Below the pieces are notes generated by a model. It did no database searches. It had not been told where the DNA came from and saw only the letters and a program-made list of their open reading frames with translations. From Monocercomonoides exilis PA203 (lineage: Eukaryota > Protista > Preaxostyla), in the NCBI GenBank assembly GCA_001643675.2, contig LSRY02000003.1, forward strand, positions 2,170,001 to 2,234,000: DNA of 64,000 nt, written 5' to 3'. A program made the translations under genes and the position numbers. Below are positions 20,252 through 52,036 of this stretch, one piece after another (position 1 is the first letter of the stretch; each line of letters opens with the position of its first letter).

Positions 20252-22420
20252 ATGATTAGGATCACAGTATTAGCTCAAATACTCGCTGCATTCCTCACCA
20301 TAAATCTCGTTCATGGAGAAGACATCGCAAACAGCATCATCAGAGGCGCTCGCCCAGACAAGGTGGAACATGCATCGGGAAATCACATCTGTGGTGCTCA
20401 GACAAGCCTCGCCCTCATCAACACCTCCTTGTGTGTGACCCATCTCAACCTCATCCCTCTCAGTGGCTGTCCACTCCTCACTGCCCAACACCACTCCGCT
20501 GCATCCATCTCCTCCTCCACTTGCACCATCCACCCGCCTTCACTCAACAACCACCACCACCACCACCACCAATGCCCCCTCTTCCTCTCTGCCCATGCCT
20601 CCCTCGCCCTCACAAACTTCTCCCTCACCACCCGCCAACCTGCCATCTTCTCCTTCCCCCTCTTCTCCACCCCAAACAATCTCCTCCCAGATGCCCACTC
20701 CCCAATCCCTGCCTCCTTCTCCATCTCCCACTCCTCTTTCTCCTCTTTCGTCTCCCTCACCCAGCCTTTCCTTTTTTCTCCTTCTTCCCTCTCTTCCCCT
20801 TCCCCTTCTCCATCCCCTTCTCCATCCCTTTCACCTTCATCTTTCTCATCCTCATCCTCATCCTCTTCTTTTTCCTCCCCTTCCCCTTCCCTTTCCCCTT
20901 CCATTTCCTCTTCCCCTTCCCCTTTCCATATCTATCACCAATCCCATCCCCACCTCCAAATCCATCTCAATCTCCATCTCTCAAACACCCTCTTCTCCAA
21001 CATCTCCTCTCCCCAATCCCCTCGATCTCTTCCATCCCTTCCCTCCCACTCACTCCATCCTTTCCTCTCAACCACTTCTTCCTCTTCTTCCACTTCTACC
21101 TCCACCAACATCAATTCAATCCCCTCCTTCTCTCTTCATTCATCCCTCTCCATCCACTCAACCATCTTCCTCCACACCCACAACCCCATCGATGGTGCCA
21201 TTCTCCCCAACCTCAACAGCCCTGCCACTTCTCTCTCTGCCTTCAACACTTCTTTCCTCCACCAAACTCGATCTTTACCAAATGATCCTGTTGTACATGT
21301 TGTAAATGAAACTCAAAGAGTGAAACCTGGAAGGTTGACTTCATTCGATGAGAACAGCCATAAATTTGAATGGTGCGAATGGAACGATTCAAATGGTGGT
21401 AGTGACCATGGAGGTGCACTTAAAATTATTTGCACAAATGCAAATCTCTCAATCGCTTCTTGTTCATTCAATAATTGTTCAACCACAGGCAATACTGCAG
21501 GTGGAGCCTTATTCTGTCAAAATTTGTTGAAAATTTCTCTCACAAAATCCAATTTCACAAGTTGTTCAGCTGCTCATGGAGGAGCAGTCACCTCATGGTA
21601 TCCGCAATCAAATTCTGCTTGGACATTCCAAGATAACAGAGTGGAAAGCTGTTCAATAACTGATTGGTGTGGAACTGGTTGGTATTTTGGAATCTATAGC
21701 ACGCCTTCAGATGCTCAATTCCTGTTCGCCAAATGCAAGTGCATATCAAATTCTGGTAACGATTCTGCTGGTTCTCTCACATTTAATCGTCCTCCACAAA
21801 ATAAACCAAGTCAGTTTTCAATTAATGAGTGTCAGTACATAAATAATAAGTTAACTTCTTCTTCCTCATTTGGAGGAGCTGCCATTTATTTTCATTTAAC
21901 TTTTAATTGGATGAATGGAATGAAATTCATCACTTTCTGTTTCTTCGATGGAAATATAGCTGCAAATGGAAGAGGAAATGATGTATTTTTCAGTGGCAAT
22001 TCCATAACACAATCTCCGTTTGAAAATTGTGGCTCAACAACCCAAGCAAAAAGAGTGTGGAATAACAATACAGCTGATAGCAATGTGAACGATGGCTGGC
22101 TCTGGCTTTTCTTTTCATATTCTTCAATGGAATTTCTTTCTTTCTTCTATCTCTTATTTTTTCTTTATCATCACCTCTCATCGCATTCCTTCTTTAATCA
22201 TTTATTCCAAACTTTTGATTTCAACTGCATTTTGTCATTTTTCCCTGTTTGTTATTTCGCTTCTCTAGCATTTTTGTCTGTTTATCCAAAAACATTTCTT
22301 TGTTTAGGCAGTTCTTTTTTCTTTTCTCAAGCTCAACTTCCAACTCAAATATCAAATCCAAATATATTCTTCCTTTCTTCCAAAGATATCTTCAATCCTC
22401 TCAATTTCATTTCCATTTAG
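20252..22420 (+). CDS. Beta-helix (Pmp-like GGA/FxxC) surface protein copy A: signal peptide, Ser/Pro/His leader and variable module
   Basis: Hydrophobic N-terminus MIRITVLAQILAAFLTINLVHG. Repeats of SFxxC..GGA[LVI], plus FCFFDGNxAxNGRGNDVFF. Family homology ends near 22100 and the ORF reads on into a T-rich trailer. Confidence 0.75.
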   Translation: MIRITVLAQILAAFLTINLVHGEDIANSIIRGARPDKVEHASGNHICGAQTSLALINTSLCVTHLNLIPLSGCPLLTAQHHSAASISSSTCTIHPPSLNNHHHHHHQCPLFLSAHASLALTNFSLTTRQPAIFSFPLFSTPNNLLPDAHSPIPASFSISHSSFSSFVSLTQPFLFSPSSLSSPSPSPSPSPSLSPSSFSSSSSSSSFSSPSPSLSPSISSSPSPFHIYHQSHPHLQIHLNLHLSNTLFSNISSPQSPRSLPSLPSHSLHPFLSTTSSSSSTSTSTNINSIPSFSLHSSLSIHSTIFLHTHNPIDGAILPNLNSPATSLSAFNTSFLHQTRSLPNDPVVHVVNETQRVKPGRLTSFDENSHKFEWCEWNDSNGGSDHGGALKIICTNANLSIASCSFNNCSTTGNTAGGALFCQNLLKISLTKSNFTSCSAAHGGAVTSWYPQSNSAWTFQDNRVESCSITDWCGTGWYFGIYSTPSDAQFLFAKCKCISNSGNDSAGSLTFNRPPQNKPSQFSINECQYINNKLTSSSSFGGAAIYFHLTFNWMNGMKFITFCFFDGNIAANGRGNDVFFSGNSITQSPFENCGSTTQAKRVWNNNTADSNVNDGWLWLFFSYSSMEFLSFFYLLFFLYHHLSSHSFFNHLFQTFDFNCILSFFPVCYFASLAFLSVYPKTFLCLGSSFFFSQAQLPTQISNPNIFFLSSKDIFNPLNFISI

Positions 22421-22794
22421 CATGCACCCTAAATCAAGTATTTCTTTTCCTATCCTCTTCCAATTTTCATTTGAAATTTTTTCCTTCATCAATGTATTTA
22501 TTTGTTTCCATTTCTTTTTTCTCTTTATTTCTAATGCTGACACAATTGATGGAGAATTCAAAATGGATGAAGTGGATTTTGAGGAAACTGTTGTGCGACA
22601 TGTTGCTGGAGTTTTGGAAGAAGACGAAGATGATGAAGAAGAAGATGATGAATAAATAGAACAAGTTGATTGATAGTTGAGATTTGCGGATACAAATGTT
22701 AACTATAAAAAAAACAGGGAGTTTCTCTGAAATCATTTTTTCTGGTTTTTCAACTTTGTTTCCGTGCTCTTCTGACAAGCAGAATCCTCCAATT

Positions 22795-24347
22795 CCTCCC
22801 TCTCCATCCACTCAACCATTTTCCTCCTCATTCACAACCCCATCGATGGAGCCATTCTCCCCAACCTCAACATCCCCTCCACTTCTCTCTCTGCCTTCAA
22901 TGTCTCTTTCCTCCATCAAACACGCTCTTCACCAAATGATCCTGTGAAATATAACGGATCTGAATCTCAAAAATTGAAACTAGAAAGAATGTCCTCATTC
23001 AGCCTGAATAGCTATCTCTTTGAGTGGTGCGAATGGAATAATTCAAATAGCGGAAGTGATTGGGGTGGAGCACTTTATGTTTATTGCACAAATGCAAATC
23101 TCACAATCACTTCTTGTTCATTCAATAATTGTTCAAATACAAATCACGGTGGAGCGTTATACAGTTACAGTTTACAGAATGTGAACATCGCTAAATCCAA
23201 TTTCACAAACTGTTCGGCACTACATGGAGGCGCAATTTGTATTGATGGTCAAAAATCATCTTCTGTTTATTCATTCTCAGATAATAGAGTTGAAGGGTGT
23301 AAAATAACGGGCATTTATGGAACTGGTTGGTATTTCTGGATCTATAACATGACCTCAGCAAGTCAATTCCTGCTCACCAAATGCAAGTGCATTTCAAATT
23401 CTGGTGGTGATTCTGCTGGTTCTCTCACATTTCATTACCCTCCACAAAACAAACCGAGTCAATTTTCAATCAATGATTGTCAGTTTAGAAACAACAAATT
23501 GACAAATGCATCTTCTACACGCGGAGGTGCAGCGATGTGTTTTTATCCTCCATATCCTTGGATGAGTGGAGTTAAATTCATCACATTCTGTTTCTTCGAT
23601 GGAAACACCGCTTCTAGTGGCAGGGGAAACGATGTGTTTTTTAATGGAAGTAATATCACTCAATCTCCATTCCAGCAATGCGGCTCAACAACTCCAACAA
23701 AAAGGGTGTATAATAATGGACAAGCAGATAATGCTGAATATAATGGCTGGCTTCCGATCATCAACCAGAACAAAATAGTATCAAATGGTGGAACTGATGC
23801 CGATGCCTGTGGCAAAACACAGCAAAGCTCCTGTGCCACAGTGGAGTATGCTCTCGGATGCGTTGCTCCCTTCAGCGATGCCTCCCTCTCTCTTCTCGTC
23901 TCCACTTTCACTCCCACAAACACTCTCACATTCAATGCAATTGACACAAAAATCACTGGAAATGATGAACTTTTTCTGATTTCTTTATTATTCTTTCCAT
24001 TTTCCATATCAGAGAAATATCCAATTCCTATCATCTTCTTTTCATCAGAAGTTTATTTTTTTCAATCAATTTTTAATCTCCGCTCGTATAAAAACATTTC
24101 TTCTTCTTTTCTTCATCAAATTTCACTTTTTCATCAAATGAAAATTCCGCTTGTTGCTTTAAGGAATCATCCGTTTTCCTCTCTTCTATCATATCAGAAA
24201 GCTCTTCAAAAGCATTTATTTCCTCAGCATTCATATTTCAACATGCTTATATCCGATTCACTCAACTGCCTTTTATTATTGCACTTCAAATATGCCTTTT
24301 CCTCAAAATCGCTTTCTCTCTTTGTTTCATCTTCAATGGCTCATTAA
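22795..24347 (+). pseudogene. Leaderless beta-helix cassette B (family homology 22795-23963)
   Basis: Begins at SIHSTIFL..HNPIDGAILPNLN just after an in-frame TGA, with no ATG or signal peptide. The frame is open to KITGN, then runs into trailer sequence. Confidence 0.75.
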
Positions 24348-25584: not shown

Positions 25585-28235
25585 AGAAGAAGAAGAAGAA
25601 GCAATATTTGACTGAAGAAGATTTTGCGTGTTTTTGGCCATGCGATTCATAACATGCGTGCTTGTCGCTGAATAAGCAAGTGAATTGTGAGAAGGCGAAT
25701 TTTGTGTTTGCAAACCGAGAAATGAGGAAAATGGTCGATTGAATGAAGGAGGATTATCAGAAGACGACGAAGAAGACGAAGAAGAAGATACAGTTGAGAA
25801 ATGCGAAATCAGTCGAACAACATTTATGAAGTTGGGAATAATTTGTGTGAAGTTGTTGATTGGCCAAAATGTCTCATTTGATATGTAAATTTCAGATTGG
25901 TTTGAAAAATTCAATCACAATATTTGTGAAGAATAGATTGTGGAAATCACTCTTGATGTATTTCTTCAAAGTCATTTTCCCTCTTTTTGCGATTTCCTCT
26001 CCATTCCTCTCAAAAATAGAAAATATTAATATTTCTTAATTTCTTTTTCTTTCCATTCCACTTTTCCATTCAGCTTACAAAATCATCAGAAAATATCAAT
26101 CCCTTCCTTTTCTTCATCTTTCCCATTTTCTTCCATAAAATCTTCTCCTCTCATAAAAACATACCCCTCTTTTGATCTAACATTTCGGAATATTCTTCTT
26201 TCAAGCTTTTGCCCTCTTTTCCTTTTTTTCAAAATCCATTTCTCCCATCAACAATAATCACCTTCCTCACCATCTCCAACCACTTCTCTATATTTTTACT
26301 ACATTTTCCTCTACAAATCTCCACCTGCTCTTCCCCACCCCTTTGTCTCAGAATTTCAATCAATCAAAAACCCCTCTCGAAAAATTAACATTACAAAATA
26401 TACTCAACTCCCGCCCTCTCCCACAAATAATCCTCTTCTATCTCTTCTCTGCCCCATATCCCTCATGTGCAAGGTGTTGATGAGATAAACATCAAATATT
26501 TCTTTTGGTGGTTGAGAATATTATTAAAGGAGATGATCATGCCAAAAACAGAAAAAACCCCTTTGGACATCCACCACGATGTGTACGGGCTGAAAAGACC
26601 CTCCAGTGAGATGTACAATGTATTTTGTAGAGATGCATTCTTTGTTGCAATTTGACCATTCTGGTGCTGAAATGGAGAGATTGATTTATTTTTTGAATGA
26701 TGATGGCTGTGGAAATGAGTGTGCTTCGCAAAAAACGAGTGAAGTGCAGTTTGTTCTTTATTTATTTTTCTATATATGAATATTAACCTGTTGAATGTTT
26801 TTGTGTTGTTTTCAGGGCAGGAGGTGGAAATAAATGAAAATGAATGAAATGTTTATAACTCATTGTGCAGGGTGACCACCGAGTTGGGAGAGCGAATTCA
26901 TATGGAAAGTGCCCAGGATGAAGGGATTGGGAAGGGAATTGGAGATGATATTTTCAGACGAGAAAAAGGATTATTTTCAATGATGAAAATGGAATTTGAG
27001 CAGAAAACGTAAATTTCACATTTTTCAGAAGAGCAAGAAATCGCTGCATTTGATGGAGAAACAACTGATGGAAAGGATTATTTGCGAATCAGATGATAAA
27101 ACACTTGAAAAAGGAAGGAATAATGAAATTGAATTGAAGAAAACAGGTGCCAATTGGATAAAATATAGATATTACCAATAAAAAAGTTTGGAAGGTTTGT
27201 TGTTATTATTTATTTTTTTGATGTGATTATTATTTTGTTTTAAGAATGCTAAAAGGATGAGGGATTAGAGGCTTTGAAAAAGAAGAAGAAAAGCAGGGAA
27301 GGAAAAATAAAGACGGACAGATGAATTTCAAGATATTATGAAGATGCCTGGCATTAACCTTTGGCGAAGAATTATTTTTGAGGAAAGATGATTTTTTGTG
27401 AAAGAAGGGGAAGTGAAAGAAGAAAAGATGGAATGAAAAGGGGATTGACGCGTGCTTTGTATTTATTGTTGGAGAGAGAGAGAAAGAGATTGAGCTGAAA
27501 GTGAAAAAGGATTCAGAGATTTCTCCTCTGCAGAAGAAAAAGGAACATAAGAAGAAAATTCGATTGAATTTCTCCGTTGGTATTAATTGACACTCATCTC
27601 TCATTTTTCAACAATTAATCATCTCATTCATTCCATTCGTCATCATGATCTTCTTCCTGTTCTTTAAACACATCAACAACATTTCACACAACTTCTTCTT
27701 CTTTATCGTCATCCACTTCATCTGATTGGATTTCTTCGAATTCTGCGTTGAAATCAGAGATCATGAATGAAATGAAGAAACGGAGAAATTTTGCGGCTGA
27801 AGGAAATAATCTCAAATTAAAATGAGAAGAAGAAGAATGAAAGAAGAGGAGAAAGAGAAAGAGAATGAGAATGAAGAGATTATTTTGAGAGGAGAACTGG
27901 AAAGGAAATGGAATCAAGAAGATTGAAAATATTTTTTGAATGAAAGGAAGAAGATGAACGAATTTCAAATATGAGTTGGAAATAAAATTTGAGAAGAGAA
28001 GGAAGGTTGAACAGCACAAAAGAGATTATTTGGATAAGAAAAGGAAGATGCTTTAGAAGCGAAAAAATTGAAAAGGGAAACAACAAAGAAGACAAATCGA
28101 TGAATTACGGGAGAAATCAAAAGTTATGAAAAGAGAGAGAAAAGAAGGAAAGAGATGAGAGGAGGTGATAGAGAAAGAAAAAATGAGAGATGGAAACAGG
28201 AAAAGCATTTCATCGGAGAATTTGGAAGGAAAAGC
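25585..28235 (-). repeat. Segment X (left): inverted paralogue of 46510-49110; includes a SWR1-derived fragment and degenerate coding-like sequence
   Basis: Collinear reverse-complement similarity, e.g. 26530-26720 vs 47950-48140 and 28000-28140 vs 46560-46710. Confidence 0.85.
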
Positions 28236-29205
28236 TAGAATCGGTCATTTTTATCAGTGTTATCAGCCGTATTGTTGTTCCACACTCTTTGTATTGGGGT
28301 TGTTGATCCACAATTTTCAAATGGAGATTGTGTGATGGAATTACCACTGAAGAACACATCATTCCCCCTGCCATTTTTGGCAGTATTACCATCGAAGAAA
28401 CAGAATGCGATGAATTTTACTCCACTCATCCAAGTGAAGGTGTTTGTGCAGCACAGCCCAGCTCCTCCATAATTTGCAGAAGCAGTCAATTTGTTATTTA
28501 TAAACTGACAATCATTGACTGAAAATTGATTTGGTTTTTCTTTCGGAGGCCAATGAAATGTGAGAGAGCCAGCAGCATCGCCACCGGAATTCGATATACA
28601 TTTGTTGTTTGAAAACAAAAATTTGCAAGTTGATGTCATATTTTCGAGCCAGAAATACCAACCAGTTCCACGCCAATCAGTTATTGAACAACTTTCAGCT
28701 TTGTTTTCCGTGAATGACCAATCAGAATTTGATTGAGGACCCCAAGAAGTGACTGCTCCACCATGAGCAGCTGAACAGCTGGTGAAGTTTGATTTTGCAG
28801 TGTTAATATTCAATAGTTGCCCACAGTATAACGCTCCTGCTTCCCCAGTAGTTGAACAATTGAAAAATGAACAAGAAGTGATTGTGAGATTTGCATTTGT
28901 GCAAGAAACAGAAAGTGCGCCACCATAACTTTCTCCACCAGTTGAATCATTCCATTCGCACAATTCAAATTTATGGCTGTTCTCATCGAATGAAGTCAAT
29001 CTACCTGGTCTCTTTCTATCAGTTTCATATCCAATGTGTTCAACAGGGGCATTTGATGAAGAACGTGTTTGATGAAGAAAAGAAACATTGAAGGCAAAGA
29101 GAGAAGTGGATGGGCTGTTTAGGTTGGGGAGGATGGCACCATCGATGGGGTTGTGGGTGTGGAGGAAGAGGGATGAGTGGATGGAGAGAGAGAAGTTGGA
29201 GGATT
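28235..29205 (-). pseudogene. Leaderless beta-helix cassette C
   Basis: Runs from SIHSSLFLHTHNPIDGAILPNLNSP to RVWNNNTADNTDKNDRF* with an open frame and no leader. Confidence 0.75.
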
Positions 29206-29362
29206 TTGTTTGCAAAAAGATCAACGAAAATGGAAGAAGAAAAAATGATATCAACGAAACACTCCGATTTTTTATTTGTAATTATTCATTTTCGCAAATA
29301 TCAGCCTTCAATCAACTCATCAATTCATTTATCATCATCACCTTCTTCTTCTTCCAATTTTT

Positions 29363-30527: not shown

Positions 30528-33140
30528 TCATTTTTGAAAGGAATTTCTATGAAAGAAGAGAATAAATGTCCGACAAGCAATGCAGATTTCATCAAATGCA
30601 CATATGAGATGTTTTCTTCTGTTTTGTGTGCCATCTCCCCAACTTTCTTCGACCTTGTGGTCACTTGCACCAATCCACCGACAAGTCAGCTGATGAAATG
30701 ATTTATGCCTTATGATCTGCACCTTCTTCAGAAGCCCCGTCGCATTGTGCGCACTCTTGTAGGGAGTCTTTGATGTCCAACAATACATTGCTTTGATGCC
30801 AAGATGACCATCCACGCATTCATTGTCAGCTGTATGCCCGTTGAGAAATATAAACAAATCGACATTCCAATCACCGAATGCTTCTGTTCTGTCATGTCCA
30901 ACAACCGAGTTGTCTTTCTGAGTGATGTTTCCCATGAAGATGAACAAGGGTTCCTTCACAGAAGCGACAAATGATTCGCACACAAAATACATATCTCTTC
31001 CGACGCTGGCCTTGTTGGCTGAAAACACGATATTGGTTATGGAAAAGGAGGATTCTGACACTTGTGAGTTTTCATTGAACTCGATCATGAGAGCACCGCC
31101 TCTTCCTCCAGAACTTGTATCCTCGCTCACAGAGCAGCTGGAGAAGGTGGTGTCACTCACTGAAAAGGAGTTGGCAGGGGCAGATGAGGCGAATGAGATG
31201 CACCCGCCATTGGTGGCAGTCTGTTGGCTTTGTGGAGCTGAGTCTATGTTGGTGATGGTGCAGTTGGCGAGGGAGAGGGAGAGGGCAGGGGAGGTGGCAG
31301 AGGAGAGGACACAGCTGGTGGGGGCGGCAGTGGAGATGATGTGGGTGATGTTGGAGGAGTTGAGGGTGAGGGGAGCGGTGAGGGAGGTGAGGTGGAAGAT
31401 GCTCTGGCTGTTGAGGGGGAGACTGGTGATTGCTGTGTGGTTGAGGGCGAGGGAGCCAGCAGTGAGGAAGAAGAGGGGAGTTTTTATTGTTATGGAGGTT
31501 GTTCCGGTGATGGTGGTTGTGTTGAGGTTGAGGGAAGGGGAGTTTTGGGAGAGGTGGAAGAGGATGGGGGTGATTTGGTTTGAGGAGTTGTGGGCAATGG
31601 CGAGGGCAGAGACTGTGAGGGAGCCCTGGGTCTGTTGGAAGAGGGCAGACGAGGCAGATGGATCTGGTGAAGAAGATGCAGATGAAAATGATGAATATGA
31701 TGAATTTGATGATGTTGATTGTGATGACTGTGAATATGAGATTGGTGGTTGGGGAATGCCACTGGAGGCGATGGTGGTGGCAGTTGTGCCATTTCCAGTG
31801 ATTTTTGTATTTGGAGCACGAAATGTGAGAGTCTTTGTGGGAGTGAAAGTGGAGACGAGAAGAGAGAGGGAGGCATCGCTGAAGGGAGCAACGCATCCGA
31901 GAGCATACTCCACTGTGGCACAGGAGCTTTGCTGTGTTTTGCCACAGGCATCGGCATCAGTTCCACCATTTGATACTATTTTGTTCTGGTTGATGATTGG
32001 AAGCCAACTGTTGTATTCAGCGTTTTCAGCTGTTCCATTATTATACACCCTTTTTGTTGGAGTTGTTGAGCCGCATTGCTGGAATGGAGATTGGGTGATA
32101 TCACTTCCGTAAAAGAACACATCGTTTCCCCTTCCATTTATTGCTGTATTGCCATCGAAGAAGCAGAATGTGATGAATTTTACTCCACTCATCCAAGTGA
32201 AGGTGTTTGTGCAGCAAAGCCCAGCTCCTCCCCATAAAGATGATGAATTTGTCAATTTATTATTGATGAATTGGCACTCATTGATTGAAAACTGAGTTGG
32301 TTTATTTTGTGGAGGCCAGTTGAATGTGAGAGAGCCAGCTGCATCACCACCAGAATTTGCGATGCACTTGCATTTGGTGAACAAAAATTGGCAAGTTGAG
32401 GTCATATTTTCGAGCCAGAAATACCAGCCAGTTCCACACCAATCTGTTATTGAACAACTTTCCACTCTGTTTTCCAAAATGTGATATTTAGAATTTGATT
32501 GCGGAGCGTACACTTCAACTGCTCCTCCATGCCTCGCTTGACAGTTCGAAAAATTGGATTTTGCGATACTGATTATCAACAAATGTGCACATAACAAAGC
32601 TCCTCCGTCCCAGCTTTCTGTGGCCGTGCATTTGCTGAATGAGCAAGATGTGATTGTGAGATTTGCATTTGCACGGTCAACATTAAGTGCCCCACCATGA
32701 CCACCTCCGCTATTTGAATTTTCCCATTCGCACCATTCAAATTTATGGCTGTTCTCATCGAATGAAGTCAACCTTCCAGGTTTCACTCTTTGAGTTTCAT
32801 TTCCAACATGTACAACAGGATCATTTGGTAAAGATCGAGTTTGGTGGAGGAAAGAGGCGTTGAAGGCAGAGAGGGAAGTAGAAGGGCTGTTGAGGTTTGG
32901 GAGGATGGAACCATCGATGGGATTGTGAGTGTGGTGGAAGAGGGATGAGTGGATGAAGAGAGATGAATGAAAGGAGAATGAGGGGATAGTATTGGTATTG
33001 GAGTTTGTGGAAGAAGAAGTGGTTGAGGTTGTTGAGGAGGCAGAAACGGATGAGTTGAGTGAGTGAGAGGGAAGAGATGGTTGAAATGGATGGGATTCGG
33101 ATGAGGAGATGATTGAAAAGAGAGTATAGGAAGAGTGAAA
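30528..33140 (-). pseudogene. Leaderless beta-helix copy D, with the only long downstream extension (further GGCI/GGAL coils)
   Basis: Leader homology starts near 33140 after an in-frame TAA, with no ATG. After KITGN the frame continues GTTATTIASSG...NGGCISF...GRGGALMIEF...FSANKASVGRDMYF. It degenerates below ~30750. Confidence 0.75.
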
Positions 33141-35330
33141 AGAGAAATTTTAAAAATTCTTTTGTGTATGTTTATGTAAAAAAAAAAATGAAATTGCTCA
33201 AACTATTTCATTTTTCCTTTGAATTATTCTTTTTGATGAAAAAAAATTGCCTTGTGTTTTCTGCAATGAAAATGAAAATAAAAAAATTATAGAAATGAAT
33301 TTTTGAATCAATAATTAAATTTTCATTTTGTTTCATTTTCACGTTTTCATCAAAAAAACGAAAAGATCGCGTTTTCAAAAGTTATTTATTTCTGAGAAAA
33401 CTGAAAACACAAAATTCAACAAGAAATCGAAATAAACCAATGATATTAAATATTCGTTTTCTGGCTTGAACTCTGGATAACTCGAAATTATTAAACCTTT
33501 TTATTTTTTTTCATTTCTTTTTTTGTGAAAAAAAAACTTCATTTGAATTCAACTGGTGAAAGTGAGTTGGAAAATGACTTAATTATTTCATCCTGAAAAA
33601 TCATTTCATTTTTGATATTTGGTGTGAATATTTCCACTGTTTATCATTTTGCAAAATTATCTTTGATATTCAAGAAAAACACTTCATCTGTGATATTGAT
33701 TGATATTTGAAACTTTGTTTCCTTCATCCTGTCAAATAATACGTTTTCATTTTGATTCGAATTGCAAGCACATGCTTGTGAACAAAACAAAATATATTAA
33801 TGAAGTGTGTGATTTTTTTTTCTTTTCTTTCTTTCTTTTTCTTTTTTCTTTTCTTTTCTTTCTTTCTTTTTTTTTTTTTTTAAAAAAAAAAGGAAATAGA
33901 AAAAACTTAATGAATGGTTCAACAATGAGGAAAACTTTTATTGTTTGAAATTCACATAAAAAAAATATATTTTAATTGGATATTTAATTAATACAGAAGA
34001 TAATAACTTTTTCCAGTGGGAATGTTAACTTCATTCTATTAGATATCTCAAACATTTTTTTTCAATTTTTCAAAAGAAATTTCAATAGAGAATTTCAACT
34101 TTTTTCTTTCAAAATAAAAAAAAGGACAATATTGCAGTGGGATGTCATTATTTGTTTATTTTTCAACCTTTGTTTGAAATATTTGTCACTTCAAACATTC
34201 GCATTTCCAGAATCAATGTCTGAAAAACAATTAAATGATAACACTGAAAGACTGATTATTGTTATGATTTCAAAAATAATCACCCAATATTGAACTGTTG
34301 TTGTCAACAACAGACTACTGTGATAATGGAGATTATCACTCTTCTCATTCAAAATGTGGAAAAGATTTTGGCCTTCACAACGAATCATTTGAAGAAGAAC
34401 AGACAAAAAATTTTTTCAAAAAGCTTCTCACAAGAACAAACATTGTAATAATGATTATTTGTTCCTGTGATCATTTTCGACAAAAAGATGATTCAAAAAA
34501 TGTGATGATAAATTATAATTGAATATTCATGAAATGATAAATGGAATGCAAATAACTATTTTTCTTTTTTTTATTCAGTTGAAAAGAATGATTTGGTGGA
34601 AATATCTTTTTTGATACTCACATATCAATCAAAACATCACTGGATTGTTTCGTCAGAAAATCGAGAATCCATTATTTTTGAGAATGTTTTGTTCTTGGTT
34701 TTTTTTTCAAATGATTCCAATGATACAGAATTGAAAAGTGAATAACCAAAGATTCTATCAGAATCAAAGAAGTTCTTCAATCCCGAAATTAACATTCAGA
34801 ATTTCATTATTTTCAGTCAACAATGACTTTTAAATAAAAATCCTTTTGAATATCAAGTTATTGTCGAACTTGACTTTTGATTCCTTCCAAAATGAAAAAT
34901 TAATAATTGTTTTTAAAAATCAATTTTTCATTTCCTGGTTGCAAAATAATAAATACAAAAACAGTGTCTGAAGTGATATAAATAAAGAAGTACATTCTCA
35001 ATAAAATAGGTATTTTCGATTGAACAAAAGATAATTCAGATAACAATACAAAAGGTATTTTGACTATTGGGTTAAAAATAAATGATTTTCCAATTATTTG
35101 CAGAAATCAAAAGGATATTAATTCTAAAAAGATTTGACAAAAAGTGAAATTTTAAAAAAATGAATATTTTCCATCAATGATATTTCTTTGAAAATAGTTT
35201 GTGAAAAAATAATTGAAAATCTCAACATAAAAATACAAATTAACATTGGTGAAAATATTCATATGAAACAAATTCAAAAATTTTAAATAGATTTTTGAAA
35301 ATTTTCAGTTGTTGTATTCTTTCTCTTTTT
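33140..35330. repeat. D/E divergent spacer: inverted paralogue of the F/G spacer (42990-45400)
   Basis: 33180-33700 mirrors 44840-45345, and 33900-35300 mirrors 43050-44450. Paralogous spurious ORFs occur at 34191-34406(-) and 43927-44142(+). Confidence 0.88.
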
Positions 35331-35340
35331 ATATCTCTAT

Positions 35341-39800: not shown

Positions 39801-40702
39801 TTCAAGGCCAAAAAGATGGTTTGATTTTTTTATTTCATTCATTTTTATTTAAAGGTGTTCTTTGAATAAATACAGATTGATCATGAACAGGAATTCCATG
39901 GAGAGAAACCTTTTAATCCTTTTTCAAAAGAACCAGAAGTTTTGAGATTATTCTGGTTTGGATTGCATTCGATGATGATATTCGTGACTTCAGCCATCTG
40001 TCATATATGATGCATAGCCTATCAATGCTTAACATGAGTTTGCAAGAGAGAGAAAAGCAATTTGTTTGGCTTATTTGTGAGAGTGTTCGGCAGAAGCGAC
40101 TCTTTTATCTGGGCTGATGAGCTGACTGGGCATTCACATTCAGAACACATTCAGTTTTTTCTATCGCCCAACGTGACCTGGAAAAGCTGACATCTTCTAT
40201 TTTTCTTCACCTTCGCTATCATTCTCAACAGTCTCACTTCAATAAATGATGTTCATTGCCAGAATCGACACATCAATCACATAATCATAAAATTCGTTAT
40301 TTTCTTCTCCTTGCCTTTGAAATTTTTGCAATTGAAATCAGATTCTTCAATCGTCAATGCTTTCTTCGATTTCGAATTCTTCTATGCCAATATCCTCATT
40401 ATGCATGAAGTTCATTTGAATTGTTGACATCATTGGACAAACATAATTTTCTTTTTCTGAGGGAAAAGCAGTTCAACCACGCAAAGTCAGTCAACGATTT
40501 GTGGACTTCCTTCTTTATCTCTTTGCATCTCTCTGACTTTCACATGTTTTGTGATGAAGATTGTTAATTTCATCTGAAATCAACTCATCGAATGATATAT
40601 TTTTCTCAATCGACATTCCTCAAGTAATCATCAACATCTTTATTAAAAGGATTGAATTTTTTCACAATTCTCAATTGCTCCATTTTCATTGGTTTCATCA
40701 TC

Positions 40703-40900
40703 TTCTCCTCCTTCTCCTTCTCCTTCTCTTTCTCCCTCTCCTTCTCCTTCTCCTTCTCCCTCTCCCTCTCCTTCTCCTTCTCCTTCTCCTTCTCCTTCTT
40801 CTCCTTCTTCTCCTTCTTCTCCTTCTTCTCCTTCTTCTCCTTCATCATCATCATCATCTTCTTCTTCTTCTTCACCTTCTTCATCATCTTCTTCTTCTTC
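40703..40900 (+). repeat. Compound (CTCCTT)n/(CTTCTTCTC)n/(TCA)n/(TCT)n pyrimidine microsatellite
   Basis: Read directly from the sequence. Confidence 0.9.
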
Positions 40901-41873
40901 AAATTTTTTTTTACACTTTTTTCTGGATCAGAGAACAGAACTTCAAACGCATTTATTCCATTCAATTCAACAGCTCCGCAAAATTGAACGGAAAATTGCT
41001 TCATTTCCTTTTCTTCGTCTCTTCAATCAATCAATAAAGGAGCTTTCTTTTCATTTTTCAATCACGATTCCTACGAAGAAAAAAAAGATGTCTTCACAAA
41101 TTCATTCATTTCATTCAAATCAACTTCTTCTTCGATTTCTTCAACGATCAATAAAAATAATGTTGAATTTTACGTTTCATTCAACTCCCGTTAAATCCAG
41201 GGCCAAGCATCATCTTTCATTTCGTTCAGAAGCACAAATGATTATTCATTCTTTCACAAAATATCAACTGAAGTTATATTTCCACGGAAGTGATTCTGCA
41301 CAAAGCAAAGAAAAGTTTGCACGTTATCAACAACTGAATCAATTCTGACTTATATTATTTTTAAACTCAAGCATATGAAGTGAAAAGGAAATGGTATAAA
41401 AGCAATTTTTGTTTGGAATGAATGAGTTTGAAAATAGCCTTCGACTGATTACACAGCTACGAAGCAACAGCGAATTATTGCAAATGAAACGATGAGGAAG
41501 AAAAGGAATCGAGAGGAAAAGGCATATTTGAAGAGAAATTATAGAGATTCTTGCTCTTATTTGATACGAAAATTTTGAAATCGGAAAGTTGAGAAAATAA
41601 ATGTTTTTGAAGAACTTTCTGATATGATCGAAGAGAGGAAAACGGAAAATTGCTTTCAACAATGAGCTTTATTTGCATTGGATGAAAAGGAGAAAATAGA
41701 GGAAGAAATGACGAAGAAATGGTTTTATACGAGCGGAGATTAAAGATTGATTGAAAAAAATAAACTTCTGATGAAAAGAAGATGATAGCTGATGGATATT
41801 TCTATGATATGGAAAATGGTCAAAATTAATAAATGGAAGAAATTATAAAGAAATAAGATAAAGGTTATTGTTT

Positions 41874-42980
41874 TCAGTGATTTTTTGTATCAACCGCGCT
41901 GAAAGAAAGTGTTTGAGTGGGAACAAATGCTGAGGTGAGGAGGGTGAGAGAGGCGTCTTGGGGATCTGTCATGCGAACAAGAGCGAATTCTATTGTTTTG
42001 CATGGACTGAGTTGTGTGATTCCGCAGAGATCGGTGTTTGCTCCATTATTTGACACGATTTTGAATGTTGTTATGAGAGGAAGCCATCTGTTGAACTCAA
42101 CATCATCAGCAGTTCCTTGATTCCACACTCTTTTTGATTCTGTTGTTGATCCACATTGATTGAATGGGGATTGGATGATGCTACTGCCATTGAAAAACAC
42201 ATCGTTTCCTCTGCCATTTTTGGCAGTGTTGCCATCGAAGAAGCAAAATGAGATGAATTTGAACCCGCTCATCCAATCATATGTTCTTGTGCAGCACAGC
42301 GCAGCACCGCCGTAGGTGGTTGGATTTTCGACTTTGTTGTTGATGAACTGGCACTCTTGGAGCAAGCATTGTTTTGGTTTTTCTGGTGGAAGCCAATGAA
42401 ATGTGACTGCACCAGCTGCATCACCACCAGTAGTTGCAATGCAGGTACAATTTTTGAACAAGAATTTTGCGTCTGATGGCATGTTATCGAGACCAAAATA
42501 CCAACCAGTTCCACACCAATCAGTTATTGAGCAACTTTCAACTTTGTTTTCTGAGAATGAATAAACAGAATTTGATTGTGGATACCATATTGCAGCTGCT
42601 CCTCCATGTAAAGCAGAACAACTTGTGAAATTGGATTTTGTGATATCTATGTTTAGCAAATATGCGCACAATAACGCTCCGCCTTGGCCATTCCCTGTGG
42701 TTGTACATTTGTTGAACGAACAAGAAGTGATTGTGAGATTTGCATTTGTGCAATAAACATCAAGAGCACCACCATTATTATTTCCTCCATTTGAATCATT
42801 CCATTCGCACCACTCAAAGAGATAGCTATTCAAAGCAGTGAAGGACAATCTGCTTAATTTCTCTTGTTGAGATTCAGATCCGTTATATTTCACAGGATCA
42901 TTTGGTAAAGATCGAGTTTGATGGAGGAAAGAGACATTGAAGGCAGAGAGAGAAGTGGATGGGCTATTGAGGGAAGGGAA
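41874..42980 (-). pseudogene. Leaderless beta-helix cassette F
   Basis: Starts at PSLNSPSTSLSAFN and ends DTKNH*, because of an extra A in the KITG junction. Confidence 0.75.
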
Positions 42981-44520
42981 GAAAGAGAGAGGAGTGAATG
43001 GAAAGAAAGAGAATGAATTTTGCCATTGAATTAAATCGAGAATTTGCTTCAAAATATGAAAATTTCTCAAAATAAATAATTTTAGCATTTATTTGCATAT
43101 GATGTTGAGATAATTAATTATTTTATCACAAACAATTTTCGATGAAATTTCTATGATGGCAAATATGAATTTCTTTTTGTTTCTCTTTTTGTTGAATCTT
43201 TTTAGAATTAATATCCTTTTGATTTCTGCAAATAATTGGAAAATCATTTATTTTTAACCCAATAGTCAAAATACCTTTTGTATTGTTATCTGAATTATCT
43301 TTTGTTCAATCGAAAATACCTATTTTATTGAGAATGTACTTCTTTTGTTTTGTCACTTCATATACTGTTTTTATATTTATTATTTTGCAACCAGGAAATG
43401 AAAAATTGATTTTTAAAAACAATTATTAATTTTTCATTTTGGAAGGAATCAAAAGTCAAGTTCAACAATGACTTGATATTCAAAAATATTTCCTTAAAAA
43501 AAGTCATTGTTGTTGACCGAAAATAATGAAATTCTGAATGTTAATTTTGGTATTCATATTTTTCTTTGAATTTGATAATTTCTTCGTTTGTTCACTTTTC
43601 AATTCTGTATTATTGGATCTATTTTTTAGAAAAACCAAGAACAAAACATTCTCATAAGTTTTTTGGTTTCATTCTTTTGTTGAAACAATCAAGTGATGTT
43701 TTGATTGATATGTGAGTTTATTCAATGATATTTCCACCAAATCATTCTTTTCAACTGAATAAAAAAATGAAAAATAGTTATTTGCATCCCAGTTATCATT
43801 TCATGAATATTCAATTAATATTTATCATCACCTTTTTTGAATTCTTTTTCAATCGAATGTTATCACAGGTTCAAATATTCATTATCACAATTTTTGTTCT
43901 TGTGAGAAGCTTTTTGAAAAAATTTTTTGTCTGTTCTTCTTCAAATGATTCGTTGTGAAGGCCAAGATTTTTTTCATATTCTGAACGAGAAAAGTAATAT
44001 TCTCCGTTCTCAAGTTTGTCTGTTGTTGACAACAATAGTTCAATATTGGGTGATTATCTTTGAAATCATAACAATAATCTATATTTCAGTGTTATCCTTC
44101 AGTTGTTTTTCACATGTAGATTCTGGAAATGTGAATGTTTGAAGTGACAAATTTTAAACAAAAAGTTGAAAAAATAAACAAAGAATAGAAATACACTTCA
44201 AAACAATTATTCTTCTTTTTTGAGAAATGAAAATTGAAATTATTAATTTTTATAATTTTGGAATGATGAATGACAGGACGTTTGAGACATCAATAAGAAT
44301 GAAGTTTATCCTCTCAATGGAAAGGACTCATTTTATATGAAACAATGAATAATAGAATACAAATTCTTTTTCCAAATATGAATTGCAAACAATGATAGCC
44401 TGACATATTGTTGAAATAATTGGAAAGTTATTCTATTTCCTTTCTTTTTATGCAATACCAAAAAAACAAAATGAATAATTTCAAATGAATAATTTGTTTT
44501 GTTTGCTAGTACTTTATGGA

Positions 44521-44753: not shown

Positions 44754-45434
44754 ACAATATCATCTTTTTTTCATTGAAAAATACATTATCCTTGATTGGT
44801 CAATGCAAATACAGTATCAAATAACGATTAATATTACAAATGAAGTGTTTTGTTTTAGAATTTCAAAGATAATTTAGCAAAATGATAAACAGTGGAAATA
44901 TTCACGCCAAATGTCAATAATGTAATGATTTTTTAAGATGAAATAATAAAGTCATCCTTTAATTCACTTTCACCATTTTATTCTTAAAAACTTGTTCTTT
45001 CACAAATAAATGAAATGAAAAAATGAAATGATTTATTAATTCCGAATTATCCAGTGTTCAAGCCAGAAAACGAATATTTAATAACAGTGGTATATTTCGA
45101 TTTCTTGTTGAATTATGTGTTTTCAGTTTTCTCAGAAATAAATATCTTTATAAATTGCGATCTGTTTGTTTTTTTGAAGATAACGTGACAACGAAACAAA
45201 ATAAAAATTTAATTATTGATTCAAAAATTCATTTCTATAATTTTTTAATTTTCATTTTCATTGCAGAAAACACAAGGCAATTTTTTTTCATCAAAAGGAA
45301 TAATTCAAAGGAAAAGTGAAACAATTTGATCAATTTCATTTTTTTAAATATAGCAAACTGCAAAAGCTCTTTCAACAAAATCAATCCATTTTAAAACATC
45401 CAATTCATCATTCGATTTCCTTCTCGTCCCATCT

Positions 45435-46509
45435 CTCACTTCCATCCCTTCCCTCACACTCACTTTATCCATTCACCTCAACCACTTCCTCTTCTCTCTC
45501 TTCCACTTCCACAAACACCAACACCAATACAATCCCCTCCTTCTCTCTTCATTCATCTCTCTCCATCCACTCAACCATCTTCCTCCTCACCCACAACCCT
45601 ATCGATGGCGCCATCCTCCCCAACCTCAACAGCCCATCAACTTCTCTCTCTGCCTTCAACTCCTCTTTTCTCCACCAAACACGCTCTTCATCAAATGCTC
45701 CTGTTGTATATGAAGGAACTGAAATCGACAGAAAGAGACCAGGTAGATTGACTTCATTCGATCAAAACAGTCATCGCTTTGAATGGTGCATATGGGAAAA
45801 TTCAAGTAGTGGATCTTCAGCAGGCGGTGCACTTCATGTTGAACGTGCATATGCAAGTCTCGCAATCACTTCATGTTCGTTTTTCAATTGTTCAACAAGC
45901 GATCATGGAGGAGCATTGTATTGTCACAGTTTGTCAAAAATTAATTTTGAAAAATCTAATTTTTCAAATTGTTCTGCATTACATGGAGGAGCGAATTGTG
46001 TAGTTAATCCTCTATCCAATTCTGTTTGGACATTCTCGCAAATTAAAGTGGAAACTTGTGAAATAACTGATTGGTGTGGAACTGGCTGGTATTTCAGACT
46101 CAATAACATGCCAAATAATGCAAAATTCTTGTTTTCAAGCTGCATGTGTATCGCCAATACTGGTGGTAATTCAGCCGGATCGTTAACATTTTATGACCCT
46201 CCAAATAACAAACCAAATCAATTTTCAATCAATGATTGCCAGTTTAAAAACAACAAATTGACAAGTGCATCTTCCACACGCGGAGGAGCTGGACTGTGTT
46301 GCACAAACACCTTCACTTGGATGAGCGGATTCAAATTCATCACATTTTGTTTCTTCGATGGAAATACTGCAACAAATGGCAGAGGAAATGATGTGTTTTT
46401 CAATGGCAGCAGTATCACCCAATCTCCTTTCCAGCAATGTGGTTCAACAACCCAAGCAAAAAGAATGCAAATTAATAAAACTGCAGATTATCAGACTTTC
46501 AATAGCTGA
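45435..46509 (+). pseudogene. Leaderless beta-helix cassette G
   Basis: Runs from SLPSLPSHSL through THNPIDGAILPNLNSP to CGSTTQAKRMQINKTADYQTFNS*, with no signal peptide. Confidence 0.75.
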
Positions 46510-49981: not shown

Positions 49982-52036
49982 TCAGTGATTTTTTGTATCA
50001 ACCGCGCTGAAAGAAAGTGTTTGAGTGGGAACAAATGCTGAGGTGAGGAGGGTGAGAGAGGCGTCTTGGGGATCTGTCATGCGAACAAGAGCGAATTCTA
50101 TTGTTTTGCATGGACTGAGTTGTGTGATTCCGCAGAGATCGGTGTTTGCTCCATTATTTGACACGATTTTGAATGTTGTTATGAGAGGAAGCCATCTGTT
50201 GAACTCAACATCATCAGCAGTTCCTTGATTCCACACTCTTTTTGATTCTGTTGTTGATCCACATTGATTGAATGGGGATTGGATGATGCTACTGCCATTG
50301 AAAAACACATCGTTTCCTCTGCCATTTTTGGCAGTGTTGCCATCGAAGAAGCAAAATGTGATGAATTTTATTCCATTCATCCAGGAATAAGTTGAATAGA
50401 AGAAAATGGCAGCGCCTCCATAATTAGTTGAAGTTGATATCAATTTGTTGTTTATGAACTGACATTCATCAATCAAAAATTGACTAGGTTTGTTACTTGG
50501 AGGATAACGAAATGTTAAGGAGCCAGCAGAATCGTTACCAGAATTTGAGATGCACTTGCATTTGATGAACAAGAATTGAGCACTTGTTGGTGTACTTCCC
50601 ATGTTAAAATACCAACCAGTTCCACACCAGTTTGTGATTGAGCAATTTTCCACTTTGTTTTCTGAGAATGAATAAACGGAATTTGACTGTGGAGTATATA
50701 TTACAACAGCACCTCCATGAACTGCTGAACAACTTGTGAAATTCGATTTTGTGATGCTGATTTGTAATAAATATTGACAGAATATTGCTCCTCCTTCACC
50801 ATTGCTTGATGTACATTTGTTGAATGAACAAGAAACTATTGTGAGATTTGCATTTGTGCAGTTAACATAAAGTGCACCACCCCAGGCACTTCCACCTTTT
50901 GAATCATTCCATTCGCACCATTCAAATTGATAGCTGTTCAAATCAGTAAATGGCAAACGACTTAATTCCTTTTTTTGAGTTTCGGATCCGTTATATCTTA
51001 CAACATCATTAGAGGAAGAACGTGTTTGGTGGAGAAAAGAAGCATTGAATGCAGAGAGAGAAGTGAATGGGTTGTTGAGGTTGGGGAGGATGGCGCCATC
51101 GATGGGGTTGTGAGTGTGGAGGAAGATGGTTGAGTGGATGGAGAGAGATGAGTGAAGGGAGAAAGAGGGGATTGTATTGAAGTTGATGTTGGTGGCTGTG
51201 GAAGAAGAGGAAGAAGTGGTTGAGAGGAAAGGATGGAGTGAGTGGGAGGGAAGGGATGGAAGAGATCGAGGGGATTGGGGAGAGGAGATGTTGGAGAAGA
51301 GGGTGTTTGAGAGATGGAGATTGAGATGGATTTGGAGGTGGGGATGGGATTGGTGATAGATATGGAAAGGGGAAGGGGAAGAGGAAATGGAAGGGGAAAG
51401 GGAAGGGGAAGAGAAAGAAAAAGAAGAGGATGGAGATGAGGATGAGAAAGATGAAGGAGAAGGGGAAAGAGATGGAGAAGGAGATGGAGAAGGGGAAGAG
51501 AGGGAAGAAGGAGAAAAAAGGAAGGGCTGGATGAGGGAGATGAAGGAGGAGAAAGAGGAGTGAGAGATGGAGAAGGAGGCAGGGATTGGGGAGTGGGCAT
51601 TATGGAGGAGATTGTTTGGGGTGGAGAAGAGGGGGAAGGAGAAGATGGCAGGTTGGTGGGTGGCGAGGGAGAAGTTTGTGAGGGCGATGGAGGCATGGGC
51701 AGAGAGGAAGAGGGGGCATTGTTGGTGGTGGTGGTTGTTGTTGAGTGAAGGCGGGTGGATGGTGCAAGTGGAGGAGCAGATGGATGCAGCAGAGTGGTGT
51801 TGGGCAGTGAGGAGTGGGCAACCAGCGAGGGGGATGATGTTGAGATGGGTCACACACAAGGAGGTGTTGATGAGGGCGAGGCTTGTCTGAGCACCACAGA
51901 TGTGATTTCCCGATGCATGTTCCACCTTGTGTGGGCGAGCGCCTCTGATGATGCTGTTTGCGATGTTCTCTTCATGAATGAGATTTATGGTGAGGAATGC
52001 GACGAGTATCTGAGCTAATAATGTGATCCTAATCAT
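49982..52036 (-). CDS. Beta-helix surface protein copy H: signal peptide, leader and variable module, ending at a frameshift
   Basis: MIRITLLAQILVAFLTINLIH. The leader is nearly the same as in copy A, the variable module differs, and the 3' end is identical to cassette F. Confidence 0.75.
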   Translation of the reverse strand: MIRITLLAQILVAFLTINLIHEENIANSIIRGARPHKVEHASGNHICGAQTSLALINTSLCVTHLNIIPLAGCPLLTAQHHSAASICSSTCTIHPPSLNNNHHHQQCPLFLSAHASIALTNFSLATHQPAIFSFPLFSTPNNLLHNAHSPIPASFSISHSSFSSFISLIQPFLFSPSSLSSPSPSPSPSLSPSPSSFSSSSPSSSFSFSSPSLSPSISSSPSPFHIYHQSHPHLQIHLNLHLSNTLFSNISSPQSPRSLPSLPSHSLHPFLSTTSSSSSTATNINFNTIPSFSLHSSLSIHSTIFLHTHNPIDGAILPNLNNPFTSLSAFNASFLHQTRSSSNDVVRYNGSETQKKELSRLPFTDLNSYQFEWCEWNDSKGGSAWGGALYVNCTNANLTIVSCSFNKCTSSNGEGGAIFCQYLLQISITKSNFTSCSAVHGGAVVIYTPQSNSVYSFSENKVENCSITNWCGTGWYFNMGSTPTSAQFLFIKCKCISNSGNDSAGSLTFRYPPSNKPSQFLIDECQFINNKLISTSTNYGGAAIFFYSTYSWMNGIKFITFCFFDGNTAKNGRGNDVFFNGSSIIQSPFNQCGSTTESKRVWNQGTADDVEFNRWLPLITTFKIVSNNGANTDLCGITQLSPCKTIEFALVRMTDPQDASLTLLTSAFVPTQTLSFSAVDTKNH

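Follow-up and report, generated by a model that had tools for sequence, protein, structure and literature searches.

The 64,000-nucleotide window analyzed here, at about 2,170,001-2,234,000 of contig LSRY02000003.1 from Monocercomonoides exilis PA203 (GCA_001643675.2), contains, between 20 and 52 kb, eight paralogous segments (copies A-H), each built around a module of ~300 codons whose reading frame, extended to the flanking stops, is uninterrupted in all eight. Sequence comparison identifies the module as the predicted hypervariable N-terminal β-helix domain of a large, M. exilis-specific family of type-I transmembrane TKL receptor kinases, and all eight copies are truncated 5' fragments of such genes rather than members with the full architecture. 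The fragments are best explained as mosaics generated by repeated non-allelic homologous recombination, mostly short-tract gene conversion of cassettes from the tip of the ectodomain, a reading to which we assign a probability of about 0.85. Paralogues in either direct or inverted orientation have exchanged DNA, and the partners lie in the cluster, elsewhere on the same chromosome and, for less recent events, on different chromosomes. Most of the events look like short-tract gene conversion over ~40-830 bp.

The modules occupy 21209-22105 (A, +), 22863-23756 (B, +), 28238-29125 (C, -), 31998-32897 (D, -), 35402-36298 (E, +), 42078-42974 (F, -), 45622-46506 (G, +) and 50186-51082 (H, -). All lie within the interval in which a preliminary description of this DNA had reported a patchwork of variable modules, and the peptide blocks that it listed as shared between particular copies are present in the translations: RSLPNDPVVHV..EWCEW in A and D, NDPVKYNGSESQ..EWCEWN in B and F, SSNAPV..GRLTSFD in C and G, GWYFWLENMTSTC in C and D, GGAGLCCTNTFTWMSG in C, D and G, ASSTRGGA in B and G, CISNSGNDSAGSLTF in A and H, and WLPIINQNK...ALGC in B and D. 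The seven GGAL contexts quoted in the same description were also recovered as given. The two strongest tracts, shared by E and F and by F and H, were absent from its list.

Exchange tracts among the modules

DNA identity between modules is 70-79%, with a background of ~73% and a synonymous divergence (dS) of ~0.8, the exception being E and F at 94.5%. An exact-run scan revealed that E 35587-36412 is identical to F 42789-41964 over 826 bp in inverted orientation, within flanks that are 72-85% identical, and that F 41845-42250 is identical to H 49953-50358 over 406 bp in direct orientation; 287 bp of the latter tract are also exact in E (36126-36412). Further exact tracts connect A 20880-21093 with H 51411-51198 (214 bp) and, inverted, B 23757-23920 with D 31997-31834 (164 bp, containing the WLPIINQNK... 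block), the B/D patch standing out at 92-95% identity within surroundings of 64-76%. The A/D match (21251-21382 and 32855-32724) spans 132 bp, composed of exact runs of 52 and 79 bp with one mismatch between them, and the earlier estimate of ~130 bp with one mismatch was therefore exact. The scan replaced a megablast self-search with a 93% filter, whose high-scoring segment pairs extended past the tracts into diverged sequence, and the main exact tracts were confirmed by an independent repeat finder. The nearest neighbor shifts along every copy: A, for example, is closest to D at alignment positions 1-180 (94-99% identity) and to others thereafter, and H is identical to E and F from alignment position ~730.

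Recombination is also supported by formal tests. For the pairwise homoplasy index (PHI), the observed value was reached in 0/1000 permutations with all eight copies, with the seven copies without F and with A, B, C, D and G alone; at third codon positions the counts were 0/1000 for all eight and 5/1000 for A, B, C, D and G. A longest-run test in the style of GENECONV placed 10 pairs at the permutation floor (p = 0.0005, or 0.014 after Bonferroni correction). A GARD-like search using the HKY+G model, with its own tree for each segment and all parameters counted per segment, lowered the corrected Akaike information criterion by 579, from 10279 for one tree to 9700 for six segments, with breakpoints at ~90, 180, 480, 570 and 720-750. 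Approximately unbiased tests were run on four segments; segment 1-180 rejected the tree of every other segment (ΔL 36-69, p ≤ 1e-5), and for segment 481-720 the other segments' trees were likewise all rejected (ΔL 45-110, p ≤ 0.0016). The trees are thus incongruent along the alignment, in agreement with the earlier proposal that no single tree explains the groupings, and the significant conversion tracts can be seen at synonymous sites as well. The A/D tract has no synonymous differences at 23 synonymous sites, compared with 0.54 outside (p = 8e-8), and synonymous divergence drops in the GGAGLCC block of C and D (p = 0.003) and in the blocks shared by C and G (p = 0.02) and by B and F (p = 0.08). 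Both breakpoints and tract ends map to the most highly conserved blocks (FEWCEW and WM.G.KFITFCFFDGNTA) or right next to them; homologous exchange would be expected to leave ends in such blocks, although precise placement is impossible there.

The module is more diverged than the DNA that surrounds it. In A (20085-21208) and H (52210-51083), which pair as parts of opposite arms of a palindrome, the leader and the serine/proline-rich (S/P-rich) part are 90-100% identical, with ~95% identity over the 5' 1.2 kb, and the leader has a proportion of synonymous differences (pS) of 0.115 and a ratio of nonsynonymous to synonymous proportions (pN/pS) of 0.37. At the start of the module, identity falls off a cliff to 68-82% (73% over the module) and pS is 0.50. 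Similarly, the non-coding flank of C and G is ~85% identical and their module 73%, and D and G are 80-92% identical upstream and 66-80% in the module. The ratio of nonsynonymous to synonymous divergence (dN/dS) within the module is 0.21-0.37, and the fact that a constrained module is more diverged than neutral flanks implies that its sequence was replaced from more distant paralogues after duplication of the arms. Intact genes on different chromosomes follow the same pattern, third positions being 36-70% identical across the module but 80-91% identical on either side of it (residues 150-300 and 680-950). As the module is more diverged than both sides in the cluster and in intact genes alike, it behaves as a hypervariable region between homogenized flanks, and its copies have been overwritten piecemeal.

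Partners of the exchange were found outside the window in loci fetched via annotated paralogues, giving 22 sampled modules in all. Six fragment copies are located 58-70 kb away (locus L003) and four ~200 kb away (L004); the other loci hold single fragments (L006, L007) or full-length genes (L002, L005, L008, L009). Copy F consists of three pieces, each 100% identical to a different partner: the 5' end to copy 3b of L003 (L003b), the middle to E and the 3' end to H. B resembles L003b at 97-100% over alignment positions 226-540, and H resembles L003a at 98-100% over positions 1-135. A tract of ~95% identity in E and F (alignment 481-660) is common to the intact gene at L008 on LSRY02000010.1, with a pS of 0.21 vs 0.42 outside (p = 0.012). 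Among the sampled copies, all recent tracts (97-100%) run from fragment to fragment; dN/dS inside these tracts is uninformative, the differences being mostly at tract edges.

The receptor-kinase family and its fragments

The intact family member P0162 (MONOS_16610) is a single intronless open reading frame (ORF) of 7938 nt encoding 2645 aa, with an N-terminal signal-like leader, one strongly hydrophobic segment (~2210-2232) with basic residues after it, and a C-terminal PF07714 match. In intact members, signal peptide, S/P-rich stretch and module are followed by a long ectodomain, a single transmembrane helix and, at the C terminus, a kinase-like domain. The window copies share 61-67% identity with P0162 over residues 62-1000. 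At least 39 long members carry the module, most of them with PF07714, and the family is dispersed over many chromosomes. A word-based search returned only uncharacterized M. exilis proteins (61-85% identity), none of them encoded in the window, and a profile search against 1.8 billion representatives gave 1678 matches. Every close match that was followed up is an M. exilis protein, 1400-2900 aa long or, for the giants, close to 7900 aa. The distant matches include proteins of Streblomastix and prokaryotic proteins of ‘outer membrane repeat’ or PGF-pre-PGF type, and some distant matches have Chlam_PMP, Beta_helix or Pectate_lyase_5 domains. The closest and all named homologues are from M. exilis, and outside this species only distant β-helix repeat proteins match. 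Pfam searches with the window modules gave nothing at E ≤ 0.01 for four copies and nothing at E ≤ 5 for the modules of D and H.

The TKL kinase expansion is described as the largest gene family of M. exilis (Karnkowska et al., PMC6759080), and 35% of the genome as ‘unclassified repeats’ that overlap kinases and are dense on scaffold3 (Treitli et al., PMC8767320). The window family falls within this expansion and among the kinase-overlapping repeats. In passages of these two papers and of a 2023 Preaxostyla paper, the terms ‘gene conversion’ and ‘pseudogene’ have no match, and the ectodomain, the fragment arrays and their mosaicism are not described.

The eight copies retain different portions of the intact gene, given here as matched residues of P0162. 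Copy A (20252..22420, +; residues 71-593) begins with an ATG at 20252 and contains a signal-peptide-like leader, a Cys-containing N-domain, the S/P-rich stretch and the module, and copy H (49982..52036, -; residues 62-657) begins with an ATG at 52036 and contains leader, S/P-rich stretch, module and the next domain. Only these two, found at the outer ends of the cluster and reading inward, have kept the leader. The longest of the eight fragments, copy D (30528..33149, -; residues 266-1000), is leaderless and extends from the module through the next domain and an S-rich linker into a second β-helix stretch, and it has neither transmembrane segment nor kinase. Module and next domain make up the leaderless copies B (22776..24347, +; residues 279-661), in which the open frame has no in-frame ATG upstream of the module, and E (35291..36859, +; residues 268-661), as well as the three-part mosaic F (41874..43088, -; residues 291-657). 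Copies C (28235..29281, -; residues 273-587) and G (45304..46509, +; residues 279-600) are leaderless, with the module and a short type of 3' end. An upstream ATG is absent in B, C, D, E and G, and the leader is absent in B and in C-G, no remnants of it having been found upstream of B-G; all frames are nevertheless open. For P0162 residues 1000-2645 no counterpart was found anywhere in the window, leaving the transmembrane segment and kinase without a match. Since the intact family genes are intronless, the window copies cannot be exons of split genes and are genuinely truncated. Truncation end-points recur at residues ~587-602, 657-669 and 943-1000.

An AlphaFold2 model of the module based on a 26-sequence alignment had a mean predicted local distance difference test score (pLDDT) of 88.9 and a predicted template modeling score of 0.86; a shallower alignment of 15 sequences gave a poor model (pLDDT 59). 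The predicted fold has ~7 coils of three short strands each, every coil starting with a G-G-A-type turn. Foldseek against the PDB returned β-solenoids as all top matches (TibA passenger domain, pentapeptide-repeat proteins, tailspikes and PL6 lyases), none of them significant (E ≥ 0.07), and a PDB profile search, which again yielded only β-solenoids and nothing significant, gave E = 0.17. Each module has four GGA[LVA] motifs and three degenerate turns (GTG, AGS, GRG), all in register; FSEN, FINN and FDGN are found in three coils of the alignment, and C-x-F-x-x-C in the remaining coils.

The preliminary description had located the variation beside the GGA motifs and regarded the Cys/Phe/Asn scaffold as fixed, and both observations are borne out. 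Around the four GGA motifs (±6 residues), entropy amounts to 1.32 bits vs 0.61 in the rest of the solenoid, a contrast reached by 0/221 circular shifts, and on the AlphaFold model strand 3 (0.37 bits) and turn T2 (0.41 bits) are low in entropy. The G-G-A turn itself is nearly invariant (0.06 bits), and values for the other elements are 1.26 bits for the pre-turn loop, 0.95 for strand 1 (by position 0.60, 1.07, 0.53 and 2.11), 0.96 for loop T1, 0.92 for strand 2 and 0.66 for loop T3. With the G-G-A turn excluded, a Mann-Whitney comparison of the pre-turn loop, strand 1 and T1 with strand 2, T2, strand 3 and T3 shows a difference at p = 0.001. In the model, the side formed by strand 3 and T2 carries the fixed Cys/Phe/Asn ladder, and the turn-proximal elements and outward strand positions vary. 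The suggestion that one face of the solenoid is diversifying stands in so far as the pre-turn loop, strand 1 and T1 are variable, ‘one face’ resting on repeat register rather than on a measured surface map. Positive selection did not emerge: pooled dN/dS, by a crude method with dS near saturation, is 0.65 at sites chosen as variable, 0.49 in the ±6 GGA flank and 0.21 in the scaffold, and no site class exceeds 1. The ratio at variable sites shows relaxed constraint or undetected diversifying selection.

Self-comparison of the window shows the cluster to be an imperfect palindrome of ~32 kb, with A, B, C, D and E in the left arm and F, G and H in the right. Partners are A and H, E and F, and the head-to-head pair D-E with G-F, leaving B and one of C or D as extras of the left arm. 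The 2.7-kb downstream flank of C pairs with the downstream flank of G, the upstream flank of G pairs with D, and the truncation types are reassorted, copy A having its 5' end as in H and its 3' end as in C and G. The arms are 80-90% identical overall and, between E and F, 5.4 kb apart, around a non-coding center (36900..41800). Window positions 37745-41011 recur at L003 5-3287 as short ungapped matches of 95-100% identity, mostly 97-99%. This recurrence next to other fragment copies, 58-70 kb away, points to a recent large segmental duplication of the array, and the palindrome belongs to a longer array on the same chromosome. Arrays of TTCTCC/CTCCTT hexamers are found at 20793-20924 and 51444-51515, where they encode the S/P-rich stretch of A and H, and stand alone upstream of C (29361-29465) and in the E-F spacer (40701-40900); the lone arrays are possibly remnants of lost 5' parts.

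The neighboring genes are ordinary eukaryotic ones, encoding an SNF2 helicase, a DHX34-like helicase, SecE and AdoHcyase (15102-16502, -). A search of the window for transposon genes, tRNAs and known RNAs able to explain the duplications found none, and a transposase search of the spacers was negative. A ~245-bp piece (4865-5110) of the 2797-aa SNF2-family ORF recurs at ~84% identity at 25565-25800 (-) and 48877-49122 (+), the distal ends of the C and G flanks, and these repeats yield small ORFs sharing the peptide QTQNSPSHNSLAYSATS... Farther downstream, a GC-rich (0.50) stretch holds a 913-aa ORF (55390-58131, -) for which Pfam gave no match and the protein collection no identical entry, and a 221-aa ORF (62940-63605, -) has a weak cyclin N-terminal match (E = 3e-4).

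Family genes are often misrepresented in the public annotation. In place of the family frames of A and B, the annotation gives a 168-aa ORF antisense to A (20398-20904, -), a 169-aa ORF that is the tail of copy A (21911-22420, +) and a 124-aa ORF antisense to B (23660-24034, -); the two antisense ORFs, E/G-rich and derived from the S/P-rich strand, look spurious. The model of MONOS_5057 (P0014, 2226 aa, L008 4642-12681) is short at its 5' end; the upstream frame is stop-free, and extension from 4642 to the annotated stop gives 2679 aa with a signal-peptide-like beginning, MMRSFPSIQTAHNIIALLILAVSCC. Many long family models likewise span just 32-67% of the module. At L005 10001-18802, MONOS_9448 (P0011, 698 aa, with an out-of-frame tail) adjoins a 1929-aa kinase-bearing model, and the two look like one full-length gene split by a frame break, either a pseudogene or a sequence error. 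P0008 (MONOS, 764 aa) is annotated as a fusion of a family fragment with a HARBI1-type DDE nuclease (PF01609, PF13359), which may reflect a merged gene model or a transposon neighbor. The locus thus flags a systematic annotation problem, in which family genes are missed, 5'-shortened or split. Intact members match the Pfam kinase model only in its C-lobe, at model positions ~160-258 (P0162 2506-2603, P0014 2080-2175, P0018 2434-2534); with an N-lobe that is very divergent or missing, these proteins could be pseudokinases.

Origin of the mosaics

In the proposed mechanism, strand invasion would find its homology in the conserved blocks and homogenized flanks, the variable loops next to the G-G-A turns would travel as cassettes and be recombined combinatorially, and the inverted arms could convert each other without deleting the interval between them. 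Unequal crossing-over and segmental duplication certainly contributed too, because the ends of the copies are reassorted and the array has a duplicate in L003.

Several points weigh against conversion as the main source of the mosaics. The dS of ~0.8 means that multiple hits inflate homoplasy-based statistics, perhaps including part of the PHI signal, and the Hudson-Kaplan Rm of 81, inflated in the same way and untrustworthy as a count, was excluded from the evidence. Breakpoints and segment trees of the GARD-like search were picked from the same data, and the shortest blocks (ASSTRGGA, CISNSGNDSAGSLTF and GWYFWLENMTSTC) are individually non-significant at synonymous sites (p = 0.18-0.34). The 22 modules were sampled from a family of dozens to hundreds of copies, and comparison of the fragments with 2-3 full-length loci in an earlier sample found no patch of ≥93% over ≥120 nt. 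In-frame stops occur in 2 of 12 modules elsewhere, two in L003b (L003 5953-6873, -) and one in L004c (L004 18072-19253, -), where they were treated as X and left unrepaired; some array copies are therefore decaying. Public annotation over A and B consists only of short ORFs, two of them antisense. Finally, polishing of the assembly could sharpen tracts of 98-99% identity to 100%.

The rival that survives best, at odds somewhat short of even, holds that the fragments are dead pseudogene debris, a functionless mosaic whose frames stay open through passive overwriting from full-length genes. The transmembrane segment and kinase are missing from 8/8 copies, leader and start codon are missing from six, no family gene is annotated over A or B, and no site class has dN/dS > 1; the decaying copies elsewhere and the share of the genome assigned to kinase-overlapping ‘unclassified repeats’ (35%, PMC8767320) fit the same picture. 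Against it, frames are open in 8/8 copies in the window and in 8/10 truncated copies sampled elsewhere despite the dS of ~0.8. If substitution were neutral, a module would remain open with a probability of 0.05-0.09 at 7.5% change per site or 0.004-0.018 at 13.5%, and the joint probability of eight open frames under neutrality is 5e-10 to 1e-16. The A/H leader has also kept a pN/pS of 0.37 since the duplication of A and H, and overwriting from full-length genes finds little reflection in the tracts: the 2-3 full-length loci compared earlier lack a patch of ≥93% over ≥120 nt, the tract common to E/F and L008 is only ~95% identical, and the 97-100% tracts connect fragments with each other. Per-site variability is correlated between fragments and intact genes (Spearman ρ = 0.73), and this, like the open frames, is equally compatible with selection on the fragments and with their continual overwriting by functional genes.

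Selection on the fragments could take the form of a germline archive, in which mitotic conversion from the truncated cassettes patches the β-helix tip of expressed TKL kinases. We consider this an unlikely role. If true, it would give a free-living-like gut flagellate a combinatorial receptor or surface repertoire analogous to diversification by immunoglobulin (Ig) pseudogenes or variable lymphocyte receptors (VLRs), and would account for part of the 35% ‘unclassified repeats’.

It is improbable that the chimeras arose through unequal crossing-over and segmental duplication in a birth-and-death process rather than through non-crossover conversion. The reassortment of 5' and 3' truncation types, as in copy A, and the large rearranged duplicates of window sequence in L003, which include non-coding spacers at 95-100% identity, are what such a process would leave. 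It does not explain internal patches bounded on both sides by lower identity, such as the E=F tract within 72-85% flanks and the B/D and A/D patches, and several partners are inverted, where a single crossover would invert the interval and leave no patch.

An assembly or polishing artefact, that is, a chimeric consensus among paralogues, is highly improbable. According to PMC8767320, the assembly was made with Canu from Oxford Nanopore Technologies reads (N50 8.9 kb) and polished with Nanopolish and ten Pilon rounds using 2x300 Illumina reads, and perfect tracts are the product expected of over-polished near-identical repeats. Polishing cannot, however, create mosaics between sequences of ~73% identity or patches of 80-97%; the mosaic signal is present at all identity levels from 80 to 99%, where reads would not cross-map, all frames are open on the ~73% background, and tract ends sit at or next to the best-conserved blocks, as homologous exchange predicts. 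Convergent or constrained choice of amino acids at a few sites, with no DNA exchange, would suit the shortest blocks (8-15 aa), which lack a significant drop in synonymous divergence, and can be dismissed as a general cause because PHI is significant on third codon positions alone, non-coding flanks exchange as well, and tracts of 130-830 bp are identical at synonymous sites, which contradicts convergence for the long blocks.

Comparison with known systems

The modules resemble the β-helix repeats of Pmp type known from Chlamydia Pmps (PF02415) and from Pmp-like surface proteins of trichomonads (PMC6701047). Shared features are GGA[ILVA] turns every 26-32 residues and a predicted three-stranded β-solenoid in an extracellular domain, FxxN-like motifs being seen in three of the coils, and the module profile matches P0033 (E = 3e-30), a protein that itself matches PF02415 (E = 2e-35); other distant matches of the profile carry PF13229 or ‘outer membrane repeat’ annotations. 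In contrast to Pmps, the window modules have no PF02415 or PF13229 match even at E ≤ 5 and carry a regular cysteine ladder, and they belong to a predicted type-I membrane protein of a eukaryote, with its kinase in the cytosol, rather than to an autotransporter; Foldseek returned no significant solved relative of the module.

Receptor-like kinase families with variable ectodomains include the transmembrane kinases of Entamoeba and the leucine-rich repeat (LRR) receptor kinases of plants. The intact relatives of the window copies are similarly built from a signal peptide, a long variable ectodomain, a single transmembrane segment and a PF07714 kinase-like domain. They differ in that the ectodomain is a Pmp-like β-helix and not of LRR or CXXC type, and in that the kinase match is confined to the C-lobe of the Pfam model; the window copies have no transmembrane segment or kinase at all.

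Conversion of cassettes underlies variant surface glycoprotein mosaics in Trypanosoma brucei, vlsE in Borrelia, msp2 in Anaplasma and vlhA in Mycoplasma synoviae, as well as diversification from Ig V pseudogenes in the chicken and VLR assembly in the lamprey. The window cassettes are likewise clustered, mostly without a start codon and with open frames, and they share patches of tens to hundreds of bp with ends in or beside conserved blocks. Their variation is concentrated in what the model predicts to be surface loops of a repeat scaffold, and a conserved 5' part is joined to a far more divergent module (A vs H). Unlike the established systems, the exchange described here is known from genome sequence alone, with one older ~95% tract shared with an intact gene in the sample, and dN/dS is below 1 at the variable sites of the window modules. 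M. exilis is a gut commensal of chinchillas and, to our knowledge, has no need for immune evasion. Arm-to-arm gene conversion is also a feature of the ampliconic palindromes of the human Y chromosome, to which the inverted E and F, with 5.4 kb between the arms and a long perfectly identical tract, bear some likeness; the window arms are, however, 80-90% identical and form mosaics with third parties, and their homogenization is patchy rather than arm-wide.

The locus is a new example of a familiar mode of evolution in multigene surface and receptor families, with fragment arrays and patchwork conversion. M. exilis is a model eukaryote without mitochondria, and for its largest gene family, the TKL kinases, and for about a third of its genome little beyond a count was previously available. 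The locus reveals what part of the repeat fraction consists of, namely arrays of truncated ectodomain cassettes that recombine with each other and occasionally share tracts with intact genes, and it gives a concrete, testable idea of the way in which receptor or surface repertoires are diversified in a metamonad. If the cassettes are used as donors, this would be one of the few examples of receptors diversified from cassettes in an organism that is neither a pathogen nor a vertebrate.

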